A stretch of DNA of 64,000 nt. Source: Zygnema circumcarinatum SAG 698-1b (taxonomy: Eukaryota; Plantae; Zygnematophyceae). Below the pieces are notes generated by a model, which was given only the letters and a program-made list of their open reading frames with translations, made no database searches and had not been told where the DNA came from. Shown here one piece after another: positions 30,453 through 52,908 of this stretch. Within the stretch, counting starts at the first letter, position 1, and each line of letters starts with the position of its first letter. The translations under genes and the position numbers were made by a program. The DNA lies in the NCBI GenBank assembly GCA_037447605.1, contig CM074804.1:434001-498000 (forward strand). The letters are read 5' to 3'.

Positions 30453-33400
30453 TTACTGCAAATGCATTCCCTGAGGGGTGATGCGCGCTGCTCCCTGCTG
30501 GGCCTGCACTCCTACTCTGCGGTACATCATCCTCACTTCCTTCTTTACCGCACGTGCCTTCCTCTGCTGCTCCTTTGCGGCCGTCTGCACGACCCCACAG
30601 AGAGTTTGAATCATTCATCCCATACAATTCAATTCAAAGTTCAAACCTGCAACATGAACGTGAAGCACAAACACGAGCATGAACGGAGAGGCACACCTTT
30701 CTTGCTTTCCTCTCCTCTGGAGTCTCGTCTTTACGTCTTGCCAAAATCTCCGGACTCCCATCAGCAACCGCCACTTTGGCCTCTCCCTGCCCTCCCACCC
30801 GTCTGGGTAAGAAGTCCACAGGAAGCTGCTCTCTCCCCGTCAATCGAATCTTATCAACGGGAACTCCTTCTGGAAGCTTCTGCAATGGCTTCCGTTCCGA
30901 TCTCTTCTTCCCCGGATCCCCGATTTTTGCAGGATGGTTGTCAAGATTGGAGTAAGTGGAAACAATGGATTCACAGTCCCACATTTCCCTCTCATCCTCT
31001 TCTGTTTCCGTCAATACTAACTCCTCTTCCTCCTCTGATACCTCGTGGTCTTCAACCCTTTCTTCTCTCCCACCAACTTCCCTCTTGGATTGCGAATCCT
31101 CGCCGATATCCTTTCCTTCTAAGCTACCATCCCTGCCATCTTCACAAGCAATCTGCTGTTCATCCCCCCCTGAAGAAGTAGCCTTTTCAGCATGCACTCC
31201 ATCAGCACTGCTCCTCTCTCCCTCTTCTTTCGTCCCCTTCGCATCTGTGGAGGGCTTCCTTTCTCTCCGACCCAACAAGCCTCTCGCTTCCTCTAATGTA
31301 TGCTCCTTCGACTGTTCCAAAAACTCATCGAGAACTGAATCAAAATGAGAAATATCTGCATGGCCCCGAGCCAACGGATCTCCTTCATCCATTTCTCCGA
31401 TCTCATCATCGTCATACTCGCGCATGGCCAACTGCACACCGCTCAATTTCACAACATGAGTCAACAAGGAACACGAAACTTTCACTCTCATTCCAAGAAA
31501 CAAGATAAGGGCCCTCCACATCAAGGCCTTGCACCAATAGAACATGCAACAACAAGAGCTCCTAAAGTGTACATCAAAGCTTGCACTGCTAAGTTCAATT
31601 TCTTCTTTTACCCACAAAGAATATTAAGAAAGAGCATGACGTTTGGCATCAACAGACTAACCACACTGCAGAGCATCTGAACCCTATCTATCTCCTTTCC
31701 TCAGAAATTGGACTGTGCTCTAATGCATTCTCTACAGCACTCATCCTTCGAACCCCTCTGTTTCAGCAATCATCAATTCCACGCTTTACGCTGCATGACT
31801 TCATACATCGCAACATAGTGATATTTATTTGTTTAAGAACGGCGCTTAAGTGCGAATTCTACATTCCTGAAGCGTTTTGAGTTGCAACCTCACATTTTCA
31901 AATTGTTCATCCAAGAGCCTCAACCGCCGGGCAGACGCTCCATCTTTCAAGGACATTTGGCGCCTCTCCTCCGCTCCCTGATCCTCGTCAGAGTCATCTT
32001 CGTCATCAAACTCCTCCCACTCATCGGACTCTTCACCAGCCTCACTTCTCATTCCTATTTTACCTGCAACAAGCTTATCCCTCTCCGCATGCTCCCGCAG
32101 CAGCTGTCCTCTTCTATCCATCTGCAACTTCCCCTTCCCTCGTCCAATACCTGCTTCTCCCTCACTCTCACCCCTCCCATCCTGCCCACCCAATTTCTCA
32201 TCTCTTTCAAAAGTTTTCCCTGAACCCTCGCCTCCCATTCCGCTGTACGCATTTGCTTGGACCACGAAGTCATCCTCAAGCTCATCTCCTGAGCCCTCCT
32301 CCGACCCCTCACTATTGTCTAGAGCTGCAAGAATGTCCGGGTCGATTCCTTTGAAAGTGTCTCCTGCCACTCGCAGTTCACGTGTCTGTGAGCTCACAGC
32401 AGTTATCACTTTCATATCCGTAATGTTCTCAAGGTCTTCAGGCGCTGACCTCAGTTCCACCATCGAAGCATCATATGCCTGCACAGAAAATGCTGCAGAC
32501 TCAATTCAGTGGAAACAATCAAAGACAGAACAAGGCGTACTTCACATCGCATCAACAAAAAAAAACTGATTAGAATTTGCTTCTCTCCATAGCTCACGTT
32601 CGCTTACAATGAAGCAGCTTCCCATCTTCGTCTTAGCGACAAAATGTCAGTGGCAATAGTCTACTAAGCACCAAAACCATAGTTGCATTTACAACAACTA
32701 AAGCCACAATTTAAAGAGATGAAGCAGGCAGCCGTCTGACGCAAGCATCCGCCCAAACGAGGTCAAGGTTGAGCTCTAACCCCAGAAAACAAAGCGGGCT
32801 GCTTGAAATCTCTACTGAAGTCTTGAACGCTTGAAATAAAGGTGTGGGGAGAATTCCTTGGCAGCTTCTGCTAAGTGTTGCGCTGAACTATTTAGCATCG
32901 TAATAGTATGCTGAACGAGGCAAAAAAACAAACAAAAAAGAACACAAACAAGTAGAATTGGCACACCTTGACATCAGCTCGAAGCGCTCCCACTCGAGTT
33001 TCCGACGGCACAAAAACGCCAAAGCTCCTCTTGATTCCAATTTCCCGGAGATGCTTAGTGTAGTCATATCCATCATCAGGAAGGCCCATCTCAAGAATCT
33101 CTCTCCTCGCATCCTCACTAAGGACTTTCTTCCCACCGCTCACACTCCATGCATCCGCTGACAGCCTGCTCATAGAGTCCGGCGCCCTCCTCCTCGCCCT
33201 CTCCCCCCCTTCTCCAAATCCATCCACTTCTTCCTCTCCTTCCTCCTCCTCCTCATCTTCCGCGTCTCCAAAGACGTCTCCCCCCCCCTCCCCCCTCTGC
33301 GGGTAGTCATCAGAGAAGCCAGGCACGTGATTGGTGCCGCCATCCGTACGCACAAAGATACGCTCTTCAGGCGCGCCCTCGCCGCCATGGCCGCCGCGGA

Positions 33401-33455
33401 AGACGAGCGAGAAGGTGGCCGCCTTGCGCTTGTCAACGAAAGGCTTCTTCCCCAT
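30453..33455 (-). CDS. LTV1: LTV1 homolog (pre-40S ribosome biogenesis factor), 4 exons
   Basis: Exons 33455-32967, 32478-31894, 31431-30697, 30584-30453; phase 0; 646 aa. Motifs MGKKPFVDKRKAATFSLVFR, LPDDGYDYTKHLREI, LEDDFVVQAN, LLDEQFE, REYDDDEIG, WDCESIVSTYSNLDNHPAKI, ETPEERKARK. Telo-box AACCCTAA at 33622-33629. Confidence 0.95.
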
Positions 33456-33498
33456 GGCACCTACCTCCCCCTCTCTCCGTCTCTCTCTCTCCCCACCT

Positions 33499-33554
<56 letters not shown>

Positions 33555-34355
33555 TCTCTCTCTCTCTCCCTCTCTCTTTTCTCTCCTGCCGAGGGAGGCG
33601 GAGGGAGGTAAGGGCGGCTGTAACCCTAATTTGAGCCCTTCTGCTTCATTAGCGAACTACACAGGCGAGCATCGTCCAATAAGCGGGATACTCATTCTTA
33701 GCTTCGGGTTTCGCAGCGGAGTTCATAATCCGTACTTTGTGCTCTTATAGTTCTCCTCTGGTTTGACGTAAGAGCGAGTTCGATTTCAATTCTTATGCTC
33801 GATTGCTCAGAATAAGTTTCACAAATGACGATGCGCCAAGTGGCAAGCGTTGACACGTGACGAGTTCTGATTGCAGCTCGGGAGGGCTTACGTCAATGAA
33901 GAAGTACAGCTCGTCTCATTCCGTACGGTACGAATTTGTAGCGTCCGTATGAAATGTACACGTGGTGAATTCCCATTAAAGGACGCTGCAGTGGCTCAGG
34001 AGGAAGGCCCCAAATGCGGGTGCTGCCGCGCTCGCTTGACGCGGAGAGAGAGGGAGAGGGAGAGAGAGAGAGGGGGAGGGGAGAGGGAGAGAGAGAGAGA
34101 GAGAGGGAGGGAGGGAGGGAGGGAGGGAGGGAGGGAGTACGAGAGAGAGCCGGGGAGAGGGAAACAGTTACAAAGGGAAATAGAGAGGCAGCGAGAGGGG
34201 AGTGAGGAGAGCGAGAAACAGGCAGAGAGAGAGAGAGCGAGGGGGGAGAGGCGTGAGAGAGAAGGAGAGGCAGAGAGAGAGCAGGAAATGAAGGGAGATA
34301 AAAGGAGAGTCAGTTAAAGGCAAGGAGGCTGGTGAAGAGAGAGGAGGAAGGCGCC

Positions 34356-37300
34356 ATGACTGCCGGGAATGAGACATTGTGTGATGCAATTGGCTCCCTT
34401 GTGCAGCACTGCATCGCTTCCAGGACGGCTGAAGGGCACCTCTTAGAGCTCTTCACTCGGCCCCTGAAGGACTCAGACACGTGAGCGCCACGTGGCCTAC
34501 CGAAGGGCCTGCTAGGATGTTGGAAAACGAAGGGGAAGGGCAGTAGGGTTTTCTGGAAGCGCTCTGTTGTAGTCTGCACATAATTAGGGCAAGATATGAG
34601 GAATTGAGTGACTTCTGACGTGTGGAAAGCGTTCGAATTTCGAAGTGGGGGCGATGTATTTCAGTAATGTGCAGCTTACAGCTGTCGTCGCAGGATGGAA
34701 TAACTTACTCTTCTTACTTACTCTTACGTCTTACTTTATGGAATAAGTGATGAATGAAACAGTCGAGGGCCAATTATCTTTGAACAGAAGTACTTTTCGT
34801 TTCATAATTGACGGAAATGTGAAATACCGGCTTAGAGAACTCACAATGTGCGGGTTCAGATCGGGGTCGGAACGCCGAGTGACTGAAAGAACCATAGTTT
34901 CATCGATTAACAGTATCTAAAAGTTTGGAAAGCCCAAACACCGTAATTAAGCAATGAGGATCTTGCTGGTTTCTTTGCTTCCTTGACTGAACCTTACACG
35001 GTACATTACGTATAAGTAGTGTAAGTTCATTTAAATTTCATTTTTTACTTTTTCCTCTATTGTATTGTATTGCAGGTGTGAGAGTTACCTCCTCTTGCCG
35101 GCTGAGAACACATGGAACCAGACCGCGCGAGCAGTACTTTATGGTGCGGGCCTAATTTGGTGCTGCATAGGCCTGGCAGCCATCACAGGAGTCTTCATGA
35201 AGGCGCTTGAAAGCATATCGAGCACCGTGGTGGAGGTGCGTTCCTTTCTAAGCTTTGAACTTTGAACTTTCAAACTCCTATGCTTTGACCTTAGATATTC
35301 TAAGCTTTGAACTTTGAACTTCTAAACTTCGAAACTAAGCTTCTGCTGAAGCTAGGTTTTGATCCCATACCGTACCACCAACGTCTTTAGGACGCTTGAT
35401 GCCATGTATTCTTGAAAATCCAAATTTAAAACGAAAAAGTTCCTCAAAAGCTAATTGTCAGTACGAAAGTCATGTTCGCAAACGTTGTGGTATATAATAT
35501 GTTGCTGGAAATGAACGGAACCCATACAATAGCTAAATCTTCACTACTCGTTGAAGAAGGGGCTTACACACGTTAGGGCACGCGCAGGTGAAGAGACAAA
35601 ATCCGTTGACAGGAGTTGAGCAGCGGTTCTATGAGCGTTACTGGAACGGAACGATCGCCAATTTGACCTTGTTGGCTTTGGGCACATCTGCTCCTGAAGT
35701 TTGTCTCGCTCTCATTGATGGTCTCAAACACCTGGGGAAGCCTCCAGGAGGTATGCCCACAACCCTTCCTATAGAAATACTGCAATTACCTTTTATCTTA
35801 TATTATCTTAAAGGCATTAATGTTCTTCATGTGCCCGGCGAGATGCATAGGCTTATATCCCCCCCTCCTTCTCTCACCTTCGTTCCTTGCATCTCTTCTG
35901 AGTCTTCAGCTAAACTCAGCTACGAAAACACGTCTGTTCTTCTGAGCTGCCTACACATTTCTGCAAGTTCTGCAACGATGACTTGTTTTCACTAATACTC
36001 TCTCTCTCTCTCTTTTTTAATCTTATGTGCGAGCAGAACTCGGGCCAGGAACCATACTGGGCTCAGCCGCATTCAACACGTTGATCATTTTGGCAGTTTG
36101 TGTGGTGGCCCCAAAGCCAGTTCCCGTAGTTCGGAAAATCTCCGATTACGGAACTTTTCTTGTGGAGCTTATTGCATCACTTTGGGCTTACTTGTGGCTA
36201 CTTCTGATCATCAAGGTGACTAAAAACCACGTATTATCCCATCATATCAATCTTCTTTATTTATGTACTCAAGTTAATCCATTCGAACCGGAGAATCCAT
36301 AGTTCTGCTCTTTTTCCATAAAAGTAATGGTAATGGCCCTTCGAATTAACATAGTGAACCAAGATGCAAAAATCATTTTCAAGCCTCTCTGGCTTGCTTT
36401 TATTCCAAACCAGACAAAATTCTGCATTCTTTACGACCCAAACCCAAGTTCGAAATTCGAATCTGAAGAAAGCCATTCCAGAAATTTCATGTAAACTTGA
36501 AATTTGAAGTTAGACTCATATATATACTCAGACTTAGATATATGGATATTTAGGGAAAAAGATGCGTACTTTACCCATCGTTTGCACTAAATACTCGTAT
36601 ATATTTAGCCTCCACCTCCCCCTCCCCCTCCCTCTGCCCCACTTTTCCCCTCCCCCCTTCCCCCCCACACTTTTTCCTCCCCCTATGTGCAGGTGATATC
36701 TCCTGGAAGAGTGAGCATTTGGGAAGCAGCCGCCACCCTCGCTCAGTTTCCTCTCTTTGTGCTTCTCGCATATGGACAAGACCAGAAATGGGCATTTGCA
36801 TGGCTTGGAAGGACCCCTATCAACAACCCTACCACTCTCTCCCACTCTACTTCTAACCTGAGCTTGAGTCAATTGGATCAGCCGGGCAGCCCAGAAGCCG
36901 CCAGTGTACCCACTTCACCCATCATGTAAGCTGCAATTCATATTAATATCGTAACATTATGGATGTCAAAAACAATAATCGATGTTTGTTCAAGATCTCA
37001 TGCATTATTGTATAGAAAGTGCTTCCTACATGCTTTGACTCACAAATCTGCGATTGATGCTACCTGTGATACTGTGTATCTCGTCTCTCTCCTCTCCACC
37101 CACCCACCCCCCCCCCCGGCCCTTCTCCTTGTTCTAATCATTTGATCGTTTTTTTCTTTTAACTATGGCAGTGTTCGCAATTCCCTTCATCAAAATTTGA
37201 AGTTTCGCGCTCGGGCAGTGAAGCTGGTGAGTCTGGTGGGGAGGGCGAGAGCTTCCACAGAGAGAGGCTTCGTAGAGGAAAGCGAAACCAAGCCAAACTT

Positions 37301-37441
37301 TGAGCTGTGTGAGCATCCTACGCCTTACTCAAGTTTTTATTCTGCCTGAACATTTAAATTTGAGTGTGAAGACCTTTGAATCTGCCAACTTGAATCAGCA
37401 ATATGACCAGCAGATTGTCAGAGATCAGGTTCAAGTCATAA

Positions 37442-37480
<39 letters not shown>

Positions 37481-40437
37481 GAGAGGAGGGAGTTTGCTCA
37501 GAGGAACGGGCTGAGCTGATTCCGTAAACGACTTCCGTTTTCAATCATTGAGTCAACTGATATCTAATGAAAAACAGCTTGTTAATGCAACATGTACAAC
37601 TATGATATGTTAACATGTTAATATAACAGCTCTACTTTTGGTTTTCTGCAGCCACATTAGATGCACCAGCTCACTGGTTTATTCGAGCAGAGTACGGAAA
37701 CACGGAACTGGAAGTTGGGCGGGAGCGAGGACCTGAAGATGAATTCGAAGACATTTCCTTCACAATGTAAGGCTTCACATCTCTCACATTCTACTATGGA
37801 AAAGTTCGCATCTATTTCCTCCTTGCCACACTTCCTTCATTATTCAGAGGGATTTTTACTTTAGGAGGTCTTAGAATAGCAGTGTCTTTTTTCTTTCATT
37901 TATCAAACAAACCTTGGAGTTTCAAGAAGTTGCACTAATAAATACATCACCCAATGTTCCTCCTCACTCTTCTTGAGGATTTCTTCACATAGATAGAGAA
38001 ACCACTAGCAATTCAAACACGCAAACACCGTCCGATTTAACCCACTCGCCCTCCCCCATCTTTCCTTTTTCCTTTTTGCACAGGTCTGGGCTGGAGATTC
38101 TCACAGAACCCCTTTTCTTACAGTTTCTCTCTCTGGATAAGTCTACAATTCCTCCCACTGAACACTTTCTTGGGCAGCTCTATGCCGACTTGAGAGGGCT
38201 ACGAGTTGGACAGCGTGAGACAAAGTGGATTGAACTGGAAGAGAAAGATGGGAGCCTTTTGGAAGGAGCCACAGTGAGCATATGTTTAGAGCTCATTGGG
38301 CGAGAGGAGGATGAAGGACCCCCTTTCCAGTTGTGGGTAGAGGTCTCTTCGGGAGCAACAGATGGCTCCAATGGAGGTAATGGAAAGTGTATTGAAAGGA
38401 GGGAAAAAACTTGGATGAATTATTTCACATAGAATTCGTCAGATCTCCCACACTATAGTCGAGGAAATGACGAACTTAACACACATGGGGAGTTGACCTC
38501 CCTTCCTCCCTCCCTCCCTCCCTACTTCCTTCACCCGTCTGCCCCACTCCACCACCCCCATCTTGCTCCCTCGCTCCCTCCTCCTCGCCTCCCGCTCCCA
38601 CCCCCCCTCTCTCCCTCCCACTCCCGCTCCCATTTCCCCTCCCTCTCCCACTCCTCCTCCGGCTCCATTTACTTCTCTTTTTTTAAGTGCACTCGTGTAT
38701 CTGCGATAGCTGTAGTTCTGACCGGCCATAAAAGGAGTGGCTTTCCTTAACTAACGCAGGCGGGTCTGACTGCAGCCTCTCCTTTTGTGGGCTCCTTTCG
38801 AGAACTCGTCCCGAAGAAGAGACCGCAGGTGAAGCGACCGAGGAAATGGGAGCGCTTGAAGCAACAATGGGTCTTACAAGTGTATGATGCAATGACGGTG
38901 GGCTACTCTCTCTCAATCTCTCTCACTCTTTCGCTGCCTCCCTCTCGCTACCTCTTCCCTCGCCCCCACCTCCCCCTCCCCCTTCCCCTCGCCACCCCCC
39001 CTCCCCCCCCCCTCCCCCGCTTCGTCCTGCAAATCTTCAAGAATTTTATAAATTAGGAATCGATTGAGAAGTCGGTTTTCATAAAAATAGTTTGAAATGT
39101 TTAATAAACCCAACATTTTTTTGGAGCTTGGGTTACTGCAGGCGGGTGGGGGAGAGGAGGAGACTAAAAAGGAGCCATCAGCACTCGACCTCGTTCTTCA
39201 CTTTTGCGCCTTTTATTGGAAGCTGCTTTTTGCAGTCATACCTCCTCCTGCTTTCTGGGGAGGCTGGCCTGCTTTCGTAGCCTGTGAGCTCTAAACCTAA
39301 TGTTACCTCTCCACTCTCTCTTTCGCTATGCTTACCTTTTCTTTTGTGACATTCTCAACATCTGCAATTTTAGACGAATGGGGATTGTCTGAAGGGGCTT
39401 TGCAGGTCTGGCAATTATGGGAGGAATCGCAGCCCTTGTAGTAGAATTTGGTCAGCTTTTCGCCTGCGCTTCAGGACTCCCCACTTTTTTCACAGCGATG
39501 ACTTTTGTTGCCGTTGTGGGTCACTCTCCCTCTCCCTCTGATTTCAAGCGTTAACTTCTTCTACGGGTTTTAGAAGCGAGTCCACTGTATTCTCCGTCGC
39601 CTTTTATGACTACCTGCACTCTCACCTCTCAGGCGCATTAAACTTCATCATGCATCCTTCTAGGTACATCATTTATCTTTCCAAATACGTCAAACGATCA
39701 TCATGCATCATTCAAACCACATCAAGCATCACATCACATATTCTAGACTCCATGTCATGTGATGCTTGATGTGTCTGGGACGATGTGGATGGTGTTTTAC
39801 GTGTCTGGAATATGTATGTGAAGTTTGATGTGTCTGGAATCATGCACGATGATGTTTTGATGTGTTTGAGGCAATGTATACTGTGTCTGGAGTGATTCCA
39901 CCACTATATTTGATGTGTCTGAAATGATGTTTGATGAACCCAGTCTCCCACCCCCCTCTCCCTGAACTCATTCCTAATCTGAAGGGATTTCCGAGCATCT
40001 ACTCCAAGAAGAGGGAAATTGACCTAAACATTCTGATTCTTCCCCTGCAGGCCACTTCCCTCCCCGACCTCCTTGCCAGCAGAATTGCGACAGAGCTTTC
40101 TCAGGATGCGGATTCCGCCATAGCCAACATCAACGGCTCCAATAGCGTCAACGTATTTTTGGGCATAGGGCTGCCCTGGCTGATAACTTCTATCTATGAT
40201 CGGACCACAAAAGGAGAGCCGTTCCTCCTCGCGAGCGCGGATATATACGAAGTTAACCTAATAGCCTTCTTCGTTACCTCGGGGCTCTGCATCGGCGTCC
40301 TCGCTCTGAGGAGATATCTAGTGGGAGGGGAGTTGGGGGGTGCTCGAGGCCCCGCTATCGCCACATCGCTGTTTTTTGCCGCTTTATGGGTCGCTTATGT
40401 TGTGTTCTGTGGTTTGAGAGTGTATGGGGTGCTCTAG
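34356..40437 (+). CDS. CaCA-superfamily cation exchanger (NCX/MHX clade) with a C2-like domain in the central cytosolic loop, 12 exons
   Basis: Exons 34356-34480, 35076-35235, 35588-35750, 36037-36215, 36693-36925, 37172-37308, 37652-37766, 38084-38336, 38760-38897, 39142-39283, 39406-39515, 40051-40437; GT-AG and phase-consistent; 713 aa. Alpha-1 repeat NLTLLALGTSAPE...LGPGTILGSAAFN; alpha-2 repeat ATSLPDLLASRIA...ANINGSNSVNVFLGIGLPW; also HFCAFYWKLLFAVIPP. Confidence 0.9.
39640..39930. repeat. Foldback (inverted repeat) built from short subrepeats in an exchanger intron
   Basis: Perfect 17-bp inverted repeat CACATCAAGCATCACAT (39718-39734) / ATGTGATGCTTGATGTG (39757-39773) inside imperfect longer arms; TGATGTGTCTGGA-like units recur on the right arm. 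Confidence 0.75.
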
Positions 40438-41267: not shown

Positions 41268-44200
41268 TTACAATATGGTCCCCCCGTCCCTCCAATTCCC
41301 GTTTGTTCTTTCCGGGCAGGATCCCACTGACTCCTCAAGTTCACTTCTGTCGTGCCCTTCAGAAACCACAGGTTGAGAAGTGTCCCTTCTTCCCATAGCG
41401 ATGGCAGTCTGCCCGTCCGGCATTATAACAGTCGTGCAAATAACATTCGGGTCCTCAAAGGTCTTCTGACTGCGATCACCAGCAGTCGTCTCTCCCCCCT
41501 CTAAGCCAGCAGAGACTGCATCATAAAGACAAGTGTCATGCAGATAAGTCAGGCGAAGCAGCAGGAAGTAATTTATCACTTTCGCTCTGAGTGCCTACGA
41601 CTTTGGAGCATCCGCAAACCCTTCCCCACTCCCTCTCTCACCTATGACTTTGGAGCATCCGCAAACCCTTCCCCACTCCCTCTCTCACCTATGACTTTGG
41701 AGCAACCTTCTTACTCTCCTTCTTCCTCTCTCTTCTACGACTTTGAGCCTCCTTAACCCTCTTCCTCTCCCTCTCTCACCTACGACTTTGGACCACCCTT
41801 CACCCTCACCCTCGTTCTCCCTCTCTCCTACGAATTTGAAGCATCCTTATCTCCCTCCCCTCTCCATCTCCATCTCTCAGCTACGCGCCTTCGGAGCATT
41901 CTTAACCCTCCCACTTTCTCACTCACCTACGACTATGGAGCATCCTTCATCTCCCTCGTCCTCTCTCTCCCGTACGAATTTCAAGCATCCATAACCCTCT
42001 CCCTCTCTCAAACCCACTCCCTCTCCCACTCTCTTGAACCTACTAATTGCAGGTCCATGGGGCTACAACATTAAACTTATTCCGAGGCTTTTTGAAGTAC
42101 GCACATGCTTGGCCTCCTGCACCAAACTCCCCTCTCTCCACAGCGTTGCGCTCCCTCCCCTTACGCATTCGCAAGTAAAGGATTAGGGCTGAGGCAAGGG
42201 CCAAAGCAAGAGCAAGGCCCCCTCCAGTGGCCCATAGGACCTGCATGAGAACATTGCCATTGCAGCTATGGCCGCTTTCGTGGCACTTGTCAGCAGGGCC
42301 GACCTGCAGCAACATGAGTTCAGCAGACAAAAGATAGAGCTCAGAGACAGAACAGGATAGGGGGAGAGGGAGAGGGAGAGGCGAAGGAGGGCGGAGGGAG
42401 GTGGATGGGTGAGGAGGATGCAGTGAATCGAGGGGTGCGCGAAGGAAAAAAAGACAAAGGAATGCGGGAGGCAAAGGGCGATAAGCGAGCTCAAGAGAAA
42501 AGTCAACTTCTTCAATGCATGGCTGAAGAGAGGTCAAACTTGCAACACTATATCAGCTAGGTTAAGGCTCAGGAAGGGTGAGAGGATCACACACACAGTG
42601 CACGGGATGTCAAGGCTTACCGGAGGTGGATTGTGAGTAAAAATTTGGGGCGAAATCGAATCATTCGCAACAGAAAGTTCCACCAGAGGTTCTATCACAC
42701 TGCGAAGCGCTGTCATCCTGCATTCCACACGTCGAAGAACATGAGCATCAAAGGCAGGATTGTGATTAAATACAGGATAAATTAGCAGCATACCGATAGG
42801 ACATGCTTTCGCCATATTCAATTTCAGAGCCCTGAAATGGGCTAATCTGGTTAAAATGCATCAGAACGGCGCAACCAAAGGGACTATACAACGGACCTGG
42901 CCTCAGGCTGCAAAGAATTCAGGGCCGAAAGCTGCGCAGCCAATTGCGAAGCCGTGTTTTGTCCTGCACTTGAACTTGAAGAGTTTGCCACTGCAGCAAT
43001 CTGAGATGTGGCTCCAAAGAGAAGCCAAAACGCCCATCGGCCATGTTTGGACTCAACTTCATTCGTCCTGTTCAGCACCTGCAATGTCAGAAGATAGCAT
43101 AGACATCTGCTCAGTGGAAATTGCGCAGACTGAATTACCATTTTCCCATCAATGACTCCATTTCTTGGGCACCACCAACTTGACTACTCCTAGGAAATGG
43201 CTTTGCAGGTCACATTTTCGATGTGGTCTGAAGACAGCATGTACTCCGTCGCCTCATCCACGTCCAGATACTCGATGGTGTCAAAAGCCCATAAGAGGAG
43301 GTAAGACCGAGCAGTCCCCATTGTCAGCCCATTCTCCACTGTATCGTTACTCCCTCCCTCCCACAATCCAGAATCAGAAGCGTAAGTGCCGCCCGGGGTC
43401 CCATGGCAAATCTGTGCATCGGCGTCTACTGTCACAGTACAAAGCTTATTTATGTAACTCGTGCCGGGGAATGTGCGATTGATGAGCTCCAAAGTGCCTG
43501 CGGGGGGTAGACAAGGAGAGAGGAAACGGCAGTCATTTTGGTGAAGGTGCGCTTTCATAGAAAGAGGAACTACATAGGATGTGATGCTAGCACAAAACTA
43601 TCAATGAATTCAACGACACAGTAAATGGAATCACTAAACGAGTGAAGGTTGGGCAAATACCTAACAAGACGCAGGCAGCCCCAATAGTGTTTCCTTGCCT
43701 CATCAAATTCTCTGCTTGCTGCTGGGCCTCAATTAGTGCATTTGTTACATTCTGCAAGTGTTTGAAAGTAAATACAGTCAGTACGAGTAATTATCCCCCG
43801 GTCTAAAAGGAAGAATTTCCAGAAAAAAGGGTTTTCGAAACAATGGAATCAAGCAGGACAAGGAATTCGACCATAGCTAAGAGGAGCAACGAATTCAGAG
43901 AGGAGCCATAGGACAAAAACACAAATGAAGACTATTAAGGTTCTTCTTAACATCAAAACAGAGGCCAGTGCAATTAGCCAGGTTAAATCGTACCAATCTC
44001 GAGATTAACGACTAGTATAAGGGCGGGGAACCTCATCTAAAACATTTAAATAATGACTCGGGTGACTTCAAGAGGAGAGATTGCGTCCAAAGCTGGACAT
44101 ATTTGGCCGACAAAGGCGACAATACGTCGAAGTCAGTGCTTAGAGAAAACTTGTGACTGAACTACTAGTTCAATTTTCGAAGTGGTCCATTCAAACTAAG

Positions 44201-45985: not shown

Positions 45986-46299
45986 AAGAGGAATATATCT
46001 CCTCTGCTCTCTCTGCTCTAGTCTTTCTCTCCTCTACTCTCTCTCCTCTGCTCATTCTCTCTCTCTCCTTTGCTCTCTCTTGTGCTCTCTCCTCTAGTCT
46101 CTCTCTCCTTTGCTCTCACTCCTCTACTCACTCTCTTTCTCTCCTTTGCTCTCTCCTCTAGTCTCTCTCTCCTCTACTCTCACTCCTCTGCTCGTTCTCT
46201 CTCCTCTATACTCTCTCTCCTCAGCACTCGCTCATTTGCTCTCTCTCTCTCTCTTCTCTCTCCTTTGCTCTCTCCTGTAGTCTCTCTCCTCTGCTCTCA

Positions 46300-47643
<1,344 letters not shown>

Positions 47644-48290
47644 CTCTCTCTCCTCTAGTTTTTCTCTCCTCTACTCTCTCTCCTTTGCTCTCTCCTGTGC
47701 TCTCTACTCTAGTCTCTCTCTCCTTTGCTCTCACTCCTCTGCTCACTCTCTTTCTCCTTTGCTCTCTCTCTCGAACGTTGCGCTGATGTGTGAGGAGGAG
47801 AAAACGGGGGGGGGGGAATATCCAAAATGGGGGGGGGCGGGATATTTCAAAACAGGGGGCAGAATAGCCGAAATGGGAGGGTCGGATTTCAAAAAAACAG
47901 TGGCGGGATAACCAAAAAAGGGGGGCGGTATATAGTTCTCCAAAAGTAACTGAAGCAACAACTACAACAACCATAATAGCAATGCCTGACAATGTTGTTG
48001 TATAATTTACCAATGCTCCACTCTTTAGTTACCATTTCCCCTTTCGAGGCAAGACACCGTTTTTGATGCTATAAAAATCAACAAACCTCACAAAAACACA
48101 ACACCATGCAATGGCCATAAACAGAGCCATGTTGTGCCATCTTCATGCACATGTTGTACTTGCTCGCATGTGTTGTTCCACATGTCCCAACCATTCGAGA
48201 AGAGGGGCGCCATGGCTGCCCTCCTCAGAAACAGAGCAAAGTGGAGGACCATCCTTCCTCAATCTTCAGCCTTTCCCCTCCATTGCCTTC

Positions 48291-49855: not shown

Positions 49856-51189
49856 TGGGCCCTTGCCTTGCTGAACACTTCCTCTGTGAGACGGAGGTGG
49901 ATGCTGCTGCAAGCGCCAGTTTTGAGATCTACGCTACATATAAGAACTCAAACAGGAATTACAAGCATTTGCAGAAGCTGAAGCAAATAGGGTCAAGCAA
50001 AGATTATGCTCACGAACACAGAACAAACAAATTAAAAATTTCATGAAGGTCATCAAAGATCCTGGATAAAAATTCCCAAATCATCATAAACTAGTCACAC
50101 TGCCACTCGAAAACTTTGCGCAATAAGTTCACTTCCGAATATTCTTAACTGACTACGAACAAAAAAGGACCCCTCTCCCAAGAGATTCCACGACTGCGAT
50201 ATACCAACGTCAAACCAAGTTTGAAAACCTCGCGCGCATACACAGCGAGCTCCGAAGCGCCCCCTCCCCTCCCCTCCCCTCCCCTCCCCTCCCCTCCCCT
50301 CCCTTCTCCTCTCCCCTCCCTTCCCTTCTCCTCTCCCCTCCCTTCTCCTCTCCTCTCCTCTCCTCTCCTCTCCTCTCCTCCCCTCTCTTCTCCGCCCCGC
50401 TATGCGCGCCCTCCCCCCCGTGCCGCCACCTGGCGCGGAGCCGTGGCCGCCGGGAGGAAGCTTGCGGGCATGGCGGCAGGGAAGCCTCCGAACGAAAAAT
50501 ATTTTCCTGCCCGGCGGAGAGCCGGGTCCTTCCTATTGGCTATCACTCCGTTTGGGCAGGTGAAAACGTTTTGCACGAAGGGCAGCTGAAGGGTGGGGTA
50601 AGCCGTACGGAAATATACAAATATGTACGGCATCATCATGGTGGCAGTCAGCCAACCACCGTTGGGTGCCAATGGTTGCGCAGAACATGCGCAGCCTTAA
50701 CATGACGCAGGAGCGTGGTTGACTAATGTTCATCAGGTGAAAGATGGCTAACTTTGACACATTTTCAATTCTGTACAGCAGTGTCTCTTAGCGTTCAGGT
50801 CGGAGAGACGCCGGCCTGCGCAGCAACGGGGCCTGCTTCCACTTGTTGCTAGTTTTGTAAAGAGCAACCCCCATGCAGCGGCTTTCTTCAGGTTTCGCCT
50901 AACTGTGCCCGCTCTGAAACTCCAAAGTCCTGCATAGTCCCATCTAACGACAGAGGCCAGCAATAGGGCAGCAACTTTGTGTCACTGTGCTCACGGAACG
51001 ATGGGAATGGATAAATTGCTACGAAAAATTCACCTCTTGCTTTCTCTGAAGAGAAGGTTGTGTTTTCTCATCTATTGAAACAATAAAAATCCGCCACGTG
51101 TACGTTTCTGTACACGTGGCGAGTACCAATTGGCTGACGCTTCACTATAGGAGCTGGCAAAAGGAGATGCGCTGCTCTTGGCTTCGGCC

Positions 51190-52908
51190 ATGGCTGCCCT
51201 CTCATGGAAGGCCTGCCATGGCGCCGCGCTTCACCTTGCAGAGGCCCTGAGGAGGAGGCCTTCTCGAGTGGTCTGCACGCAGAAGCTGCCACAAAGCCTC
51301 CGCCATGGCCTGCATTCTCAGCACGGCGCGCTTTTTGCACGGAGAACAGTCAACGCGGAGGCAGGCGGAGGCTTGGAGCTCTTTGCAGAGAATATTCCCT
51401 TGTCAGAACGTAAGGCAGAGCATTGTGTTCCTTTGCGGGAGCTTCTGGCATGGCGGCGGTCTGCTATCTTGAGATGCCTGGAAACAGGGGACCGCTTCTT
51501 GCAGGAGGACGGCGGCCCAGGGGCTGAAGAGCTTCTGCAGGAAATAGAGTGGCTTTTGGAGGATGCAGTTGCAGCTATTTCGCAGTCGGACCCTTTTCAG
51601 GAAGGGAAATTCCCCATGGGTGCCTGCTCTTGGAGGGAGCTTTCGTCTGTCTTGCGCAGCAGTGGCTGGATTGGACGAGAAAGAGGGGCACAGGAGAACA
51701 ATGGTGGGAGCTTCCATTTGCAGGGGCCTACGTCCTTGCAAATGGAACACGTTTCTGTGAAGCTTCGCGCCAGTCTAGAAAAAGAAATTGCGGTTTTGTG
51801 GCAGGAGAGGATAGAGAAACGGACGCCTTTCCAGTACCTTGTATCTGCAGCACATTGGCGAGACTTGGTTCTTGCAGTGCGTCCAGGAGTTCTTATTCCA
51901 CGACCGGAGACGGAGCTTCTAATAGACATGGCAGCTTCAGCCTTGACTGATAACCCTGAGCGAGCTAACTATGCCTGGGCGGACTTAGGGACGGGCAGTG
52001 GCGCAATAGCTATTGCTTTGGCGCAGCTGCTTCCCTCTCACACAAAGGTAGTGGCTGTGGATGTCAGTGAAGTAGCGATATCCGTTACGTCTGCAAATGT
52101 TCAGCGATACAAAATGAAGGTAGGCTGCTTCCCGTTTTTTTCTTGCTTTGACTTGTCGGTCGAGTCGTCTATTATTTTATCGATAATGAGAAACTCTTGA
52201 ATATGTCGTATAGTTCAATTAGCTCTGGCGGACCAATGCTTTGGGTGTTCTGTTCTTATTGCAGGATCGCATTGAAATTGCTTTCGGGAGCTGGTTCAAT
52301 CCTCTGAAGAACCTGATGGGCCAGTTGGGAGGCATAATTAGCAATCCTCCATACATTCCTTCGCATAATCTTGGAGGACTTCAGGCTGAAGTTGGGCTGC
52401 ACGAACCATGGCTTGCGCTGGATGGTGGGACAGGAGAAGGAACTGATTCTTTAAGAGAGATTGCTGAAGGAGCCGCGTTGGCTCTAATACCTGGAGGGTA
52501 TCTTGCGTTGGAGGTGGGAATGCATCCTTCCTCGTTTGTTTTGCTTAAAGTGCAATTGCCACTTGTAGGGACTACCTTGGCTTGGTTATCAAGAAGAGAA
52601 GATAAGTAGTAAACGATAGACAGCATGGTGTATGACTATTAAGCTCGTATTTGGAAATACTCAGGGCAGTATAGAGGAAGACTTATAGGTTTGTGGACTT
52701 ATGTACCGGTCGTTATTGCGTTTGGGATTTGCAGACCAATGGTAATGAGCAAGCTGGGAGGGTGGCCGCCTACCTCTCTCTCTTGCCAGGCTGCCCATTT
52801 GAGGACGTACAAATCACCAAGGATTTGGGGGGAATTCCGCGATTTGTCAGTGCTGTACGGAAAGCCTCTCCCACTGCCTCCCCCCACAGTTTACGGTTAC
52901 GTGTTTGA
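51190..52908 (+). CDS. prmC: Release factor glutamine N5-methyltransferase (HemK/PrmC), probably organellar, 3 exons
   Basis: Exons 51190-52119, 52265-52513, 52735-52908; 450 aa. Motifs RTPFQYL, VLIPRPETE, WADLGTGSGAIAIALA, ISNPPYI, EPWLALDGG, LALETNGNEQA; N-terminus resembles a transit peptide. Confidence 0.95.

Follow-up and report, generated by a model that had tools for sequence, protein, structure and literature searches.

An NCX-type exchanger gene of the streptophyte alga Zygnema circumcarinatum with a candidate sensor module in the loop that carries Calx-beta domains in animal NCX

The DNA analysed here comprises 64,000 nucleotides of the genome of Zygnema circumcarinatum SAG 698-1b (GenBank assembly GCA_037447605.1, contig CM074804.1, positions 434,001 to 498,000 of the forward strand). 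We refer to this whole stretch as the window, and give all coordinates relative to its first nucleotide. On the + strand, at 34356-40437, lies a cation exchanger gene of 12 exons, which are joined by GT..AG introns at every junction into one open frame of 721 residues. This report is concerned with the long loop between transmembrane segments 5 and 6 (TM5 and TM6) of the exchanger, and especially with the part of that loop encoded by exons 6, 7 and 8. We establish the gene model, its expression and constitutive splicing, the presence of NCX-type residues at the ion sites, and the lack of any detectable Calx-beta domain. We also consider it fairly probable that, in the loop of this exchanger, the place of the Calx-beta sensors is taken by an acidic regulatory module that is restricted to its lineage and probably folded.

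The gene model was compared with RNA contigs over 34320-40300 from four public runs (X1, X2, X3 and X6), which represent three studies of the same organism. Exons 1 to 5 lie at 34356-34480, 35076-35235, 35588-35750, 36037-36215 and 36693-36925. They are followed by exon 6 (37172-37308, residues 287-333), exon 7 (37652-37766, residues 333-371), exon 8 (38084-38376, residues 371-469) and exon 9 (38776-38897, residues 469-509), and then by exons 10 to 12 at 39142-39283, 39406-39515 and 40051-40437. Every exon junction, including 36925/37172 at the start of exon 6, is crossed by spliced RNA contigs at a word depth of 79 to 240, and intron sequence is found only in contigs of depth 0 to 16.

An initial annotation, made from the letters of the window, had proposed three in-phase loop exons and the junctions 37308/37652, 37766/38084 and 38336/38760. 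The three exons are real and are present at full exon depth in spliced RNA, and their translation agrees with the proposed one up to ...PPFQLW. The first two junctions are exactly as predicted, with GT..AG ends and spliced contigs in X1, X2, X3 and X6. The third was misplaced, however: position 38376 is joined to 38776 in all four runs, with the frame kept. Exon 8 is thus longer by 40 nucleotides, and exon 9 is shorter by 16 nucleotides at its 5' end. In the corrected model, exon 8 ends in ...FQLWVEVSSGATDGSNG and exon 9 begins with ...SPFVGSF, with an Ala codon across the junction, where the previous reading had been AGLTAASPF. The correction also assigns a Gly/Ser linker and one additional predicted strand to exon 8. 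No joint that skips exons 6 to 8 was reported among the RNA contigs of the four runs, so these exons are constitutive in the sampled RNA.

Two further features of the transcribed region were recorded. A minor alternative donor at 39661, within intron 11, is joined to the exon 12 acceptor at 40051 in one run (depth 33, compared with 222 for the main junction). C-rich low-complexity arrays of the CCCTCC type, with periods of 31 to 36, occupy parts of introns 5, 8 and 9 (36600-36690, 38500-38680 and 38900-39030), and some of them lie directly upstream of acceptor sites.

Pfam family Na_Ca_ex matches exons 3, 4 and 12, and so covers both membrane halves, which places the protein in the CaCA/NCX family. 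The closest solved relatives are structures of human NCX1 (exon 12 matches at E 7.4e-24, exons 3 and 4 at 1e-6 to 8e-8). The alpha-1 repeat region, with the motifs GTSAPE and GSAAFN, extends over TM2 to TM5 and is encoded by exons 3 and 4 (35588-36215); it aligns to human NCX1 residues 125-222, and the Glu of GSSAPE is kept. Exons 10 to 12 (39142-40437) encode TM6 to TM10 with the alpha-2 repeat (ATSLPD and GSNSVNVFLGIG), a region that likewise matches Na_Ca_ex and human NCX1, the Pfam match of exon 12 having an E value of 1.8e-12.

The ion-site residues distinguish between the two types of exchanger that the initial annotation had left side by side, NCX and MHX. In all MHX proteins, the residue corresponding to NCX1 Glu-113 is replaced by Gln, with changes also at Asp-825 and Phe-844 (Emery et al., PMC3355786). 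When the Zygnema protein is aligned to NCX1, the replacement of Glu-113 by Gln is not found: the alpha-1 motif GTSAPE keeps the matching Glu, and Phe-844 is kept too. The position of Asp-825, counted along the alignment of exon 12 to NCX1, is occupied by Ser. Because Glu-113 and Phe-844 are kept, the ion sites are of the NCX type and are not those of a typical MHX. The assignment to the exchanger family as such stands, and within it these residues favour the NCX type over the MHX type. As judged from its sequence, this streptophyte-algal gene encodes a Ca2+/cation exchanger of the CaCA superfamily and of the NCX type.

The loop between TM5 and TM6 has a length of about 285 residues, from about residue 240 to residue 525. 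It begins with a linker rich in Ser, Thr, Pro and Asn (about residues 240-287), which is encoded at 36783-36925 in the 3' part of exon 5 and has no Pfam match; 29 of the 54 residues in positions 240-293 are P, S, T, G, N or Q. The 167 residues at 294-460 include 54 hydrophobic residues (32%), as well as 32 D and E versus 18 K and R, and neither repeats nor low complexity were found in them. Exon 6 encodes the start of this module and includes NLKFRARAVKLVSLV, an amphipathic, beta-type stretch with the corresponding hydrophobic periodicity, together with an acidic stretch. Exon 7 contributes an acidic segment that follows a predicted beta-hairpin, and exon 8 supplies the core of the module. On the C-terminal side are the Gly/Ser linker and then, in exon 9, the basic cluster KKRPQVKRPRKWERLK and a conserved helix that precedes TM6. 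This pre-TM6 helix, with its W..Q pattern, alone among the loop segments finds a match when the loop is compared with 140 NCX relatives by using phmmer. No paralogous copies of the loop domain were found within the window.

Homologues of the module were sought by comparing the first 84 residues of exon 8, which reach to the exon end of the initial annotation, with 1.84 billion cluster representatives by using phmmer. Only three matches were obtained, all of them repeat proteins (one with FMN_bind repeats and two with TPR repeats). The FMN_bind-repeat protein (P0001, E 1e-9) and the TPR matches were rejected, because each owes its score to the addition of four to seven weak matches to repeats. 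Exact look-ups of exon products, and comparison of an exon-junction 24-mer and the exon 12 protein with metagenome contigs, did not recover the spliced protein of the organism itself. Nothing homologous to exon 8 turned up among short proteins, phmmer found no PDB sequence that matches the loop exons, and no Pfam family was matched by exon 6, 7 or 8 at E<=10 when each exon was scanned singly. Orthologues below about 35% identity would escape a library of this size; the module is therefore restricted to its lineage or fast-evolving.

A segment that has neither a homologue nor a family match, and that adjoins loop parts of low complexity, might be a spacer that evolves fast, lacks structure for the most part and contains no discrete domain. 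We regard this as very unlikely for exons 6 to 8, given their globular-like composition and constitutive inclusion. Moreover, AlphaFold2 (AF2) predicts strands with a predicted local distance difference test score (pLDDT) of about 80 to 88 even without an alignment. The highest of these values belong to exon 7, which, modelled alone, forms a beta-hairpin with strands at its residues 6-12 and 19-25 (pLDDT up to 88), an arrangement compatible with either of the folds discussed below. Taken with the composition, the exon 7 hairpin and the exon 8 strands suggest that the module is probably folded.

Relatives of the whole exchanger were gathered by two alignment-based searches, the first with exon 12 and the second with exons 3, 4 and 12 aligned to the protist NCX P0063. 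At least 140 relatives were obtained, and 120 are listed above 547 bits; the protein encoded in the window would itself score 537, so absence from that list is uninformative. The listed relatives are mainly NCX proteins of dinoflagellates, other protists and animals, and nearly all of them carry Calx-beta. Neither a C2 nor a PAS domain occurs in any of the relatives listed (the top 120 of the profile search and the earlier matches). Two dinoflagellate relatives, P0126 and P0146, have extra modules beside Calx-beta (TPR repeats and PDZ domains), indicating that accretion of loop or terminal domains occurs elsewhere in the NCX family.

Given these relatives, the most parsimonious history would make the module a strongly diverged remnant of an ancestral Calx-beta domain (Ca2+-binding domain, or CBD) with a helix-loop-helix insertion, and not a newly gained fold. 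The best full-length relatives have a single Calx-beta domain at the same position. In BLAST alignments, the whole protein is collinear with P0063 (30% identity), and the segment ...ELEEKDG...FQLWVEV faces the last Calx-beta strands of that protein. This placement, however, is driven by the conserved flanks. Hidden Markov models of Calx-beta were built from the loop domains of relatives, with 105 domains at first and then with 149 domains of 130 NCX relatives. Against the larger model, at least 2304 of 3000 shuffles of the spliced domain outscored the domain itself, and when HMMER was used with the two Calx-beta profiles, the real sequence had no reportable score, although most shuffles received one. 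Alignment with hhalign selected the same 34 columns as the BLAST placement, over the last strands, but with P=0.33. PF03160 matched no loop exon at E<=10, so that CBD1 and CBD2, which animal NCX proteins carry in this loop, were not found, and the phmmer comparison with the 140 relatives had matched the pre-TM6 helix and nothing of the module. The earlier reading, in which another domain stands in place of Calx-beta, is supported on this point: Calx-beta is not detectable by Pfam scans of each exon or by custom profiles and hhalign on the spliced loop. A decayed Calx-beta domain appears improbable, as it lacks statistical support in these comparisons.

What fold the module adopts instead is suggested differently by different methods. 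When exon 8 was modelled alone by AF2 (97 residues, single sequence), the best model had a pLDDT of 70 and a predicted template-modelling score of 0.54, and the other four had a pLDDT of 52 to 56. In the best model, a strand is followed by two helices and then by three more strands; pLDDT is about 80 for these three C-terminal strands and 58 to 77 for the helices EPLFLQFLSL and HFLGQLYADLRG. In three independent shape searches, this model resembles domains of the PAS, LOV and GAF types. All of the top 50 Foldseek matches in the PDB are of these types, with E values from 2.4e-3, and the ESM Atlas shape search gave template-modelling scores of 0.58 to 0.65, values of shape similarity that are middling by the tools' own notes. 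On this evidence, exons 7 and 8 (about residues 338-460, with a core at 365-460) can be read tentatively as a PAS-like alpha/beta sensor, in which a five-stranded antiparallel sheet is flanked by helices. In the manner of KCNH-channel PAS domains, such a module would possibly bind a small ligand or a partner. No family of the PAS clan, however, emerged when the exons were scanned with Pfam.

The initial annotation had assigned the same exons to a C2 domain. A different fold in the position of the sensor is supported to the extent that an acidic, hydrophobically patterned module unlike Calx-beta is present there, but its identity as C2 is not established. The sequence pattern offered as evidence for C2 had been derived from this very sequence, and no profile method recognises it. 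Because the same residues can be fitted by eye to the consensus motifs of C2, PAS and Calx-beta, the pattern is no evidence by itself. We gave no weight to such fits, including a collinear match to C2 strand motifs over exons 6, 7 and 8, and the by-eye placement of residues (DKS and TEH) from the set of five Asp that binds Ca2+ in C2 loops 1 and 3 depends on an unproven alignment.

Indications of C2 come from the ESM Atlas feature search with exon 8, in which PF00168 is present in 82 of the 100 nearest clusters (top score 0.91) and the remaining named clusters belong to C2-like families (RPGR1_C, DUF1005 and C2-C2_1). The segment EHFLGQLYADLRG also has beta-type hydrophobic periodicity (0.53 versus 0.33). 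One could accordingly picture exons 6 to 8 as an eight-stranded beta-sandwich of the C2 type, probably independent of Ca2+, that anchors the loop to membrane lipid or to a partner protein. Several results make this reading doubtful. The recognition value of the feature search is 2290 (below 2300) with 141 shared features, where true members usually have at least 170, and the tool classes such values as chance or distant; the search with only exon 7 gave no match and no information. PF00168 is matched by none of exons 6, 7 and 8, even at E<=10 in scans of single exons, and phmmer found no C2 domain among PDB sequences. AF2, in the model of exon 8 alone, forms helices, albeit with low confidence, from the very segments that a C2 domain requires as strands 5 and 6. 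Hydrophobic periodicity is mixed on this point, being helix-like for the first of the disputed segments and strand-like for the second. In addition, the corrected end of exon 8 brings in a further strand, FQLWVEVS, that is superfluous to the eight-strand scheme, and C2 is absent from the NCX relatives listed. Overall, a PAS-like alpha/beta fold and a C2-like beta-sandwich are each possible but tentative assignments, some other or partly disordered structure is unlikely, and a degenerate Calx-beta fold is more unlikely still.

Several considerations weigh against the proposal of a folded regulatory module. The indicators of fold contradict each other, as ESM features point to C2 and the AF2 shape points to PAS. 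AF2 was run twice, each time on one sequence of a partial construct, and its confidence was no more than moderate; the Pfam scans likewise covered single exons. The searches described above found no true homologue of the module, and hence no evidence from conservation for selection as a domain. Finally, its regulatory role is assigned from position only, by analogy with NCX1.

With these points in mind, we propose that a module of about 125 to 170 residues, encoded by exons 6 to 8, would be joined to TM5 by the Ser/Thr/Pro-rich linker, and that the Gly/Ser linker and the strongly basic stretch would lead from it to the conserved pre-TM6 helix. By homology with the topology of NCX1, we infer a cytosolic position for the module. 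There it would detect a signal in the cytosol and, by way of the pre-TM6 helix, influence transport in the manner of CBD1 and CBD2 in NCX1; it may act jointly with the adjacent basic stretch. On the basis of its position in the loop, the module is most likely an allosteric regulator. A more specific version of the proposal could well be correct, although we put it forward with some reserve: the exchanger would keep the Ca2+-site Glu that is lost in land-plant MHX but its Calx-beta sensors would have given way to a PAS-like or C2-like orphan fold, likewise a sensor, that occurs in no other sequenced protein.

Simple repeats occur around the gene in the window. Shorter CT/GA microsatellites at 33471-33585 and 34044-34281 flank the 5' end of the exchanger gene. 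A tandem array at 41594-41965, located 1.1 kb downstream of the exchanger stop codon, consists of 47-nucleotide units (periods of 91 to 101 are also seen) with the core CCTACGACTTTGGAGCATCC... in about four to eight copies. Farther downstream, about 884 copies of TC form a (TC)n tract of 1.8 kb (45998-47772), which accounts for the extreme GC and AT skew at 46 to 48 kb. Two open reading frames were also noted. One, at 32892-33455 on the - strand, is divergent from the exchanger gene and starts with MGKKPFVDKRKAATF..., which may resemble the N-terminus of LTV1-type ribosome-biogenesis proteins; this tentative likeness is not confirmed by Pfam, which gives no match at E<=1e-3. The other, at 51178-52197 on the + strand, has a weak signature of class I methyltransferases (PrmA/MTS, E about 6e-7) and probably represents a single exon of a gene for a methyltransferase.

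The animal exchangers NCX1-3 (SLC8A1-3; human NCX1 is represented by PDB 8sgi and 8jp0) share with the Zygnema protein the ten-TM CaCA core with alpha-1 and alpha-2 repeats, the motifs GTSAPE (with its Glu), GSAAFN, ATSLPD and GSNSVNVFLGIG, a large TM5-TM6 loop and the pre-TM6 helix. The Zygnema loop differs in its length (about 285 residues, compared with about 500 in NCX) and in having the orphan module instead of detectable CBD1 and CBD2. It also lacks the basic XIP segment that directly follows TM5 in the animal proteins, and its basic cluster is located just before the pre-TM6 helix. Protist NCX proteins with a single Calx-beta domain (for example P0063, P0075 from Prorocentrum, and P0066) are the best full-length relatives found, being collinear over about 690 residues at 30% identity. 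They are of similar length (746 to 776 residues) and likewise have one loop domain, but theirs is a recognisable Calx-beta (PF03160) and the module described here is not.

Land-plant MHX, of which the Mg2+/H+ exchanger AtMHX is an example, is also a green-lineage relative of NCX without Calx-beta motifs in its central loop, and the position of Asp-825 is substituted in both. The changes at Glu-113 and Phe-844 in MHX (PMC3355786) set it apart from the Zygnema protein, which also has a longer loop with an extra module; the MHX loop is shorter and has no CBD motifs (PMC3355786). AtMHX is reported to be activated by Ca2+ from the cytosolic side (PMC3679957). Our literature searches found no description of a C2 or PAS domain in NCX or MHX. 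KCNH channels (EAG/hERG) and C2-regulated membrane proteins, which combine a transport protein with an appended cytosolic sensor fold, offer an analogy only, with no sequence kinship; the exon 8 model does, in structure, match the PAS domains of hERG and ELK among others.

Regulation of NCX is understood almost wholly through the pair of Calx-beta domains CBD1 and CBD2, and we know of no established mechanism for the regulation of land-plant MHX. If the module were only a decayed Calx-beta domain or a spacer, the Zygnema loop would be a case of ordinary lineage-specific divergence. If the proposal made here is correct, however, the module would be a compact candidate domain for the binding of Ca2+, lipid or another ligand, and the exchanger would be regulated through an architecture new to the CaCA superfamily and might stand between the NCX of algae and the MHX of land plants. 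A streptophyte-algal exchanger that combines NCX-type ion sites with a different sensor module could show how the loop was remodelled toward MHX.

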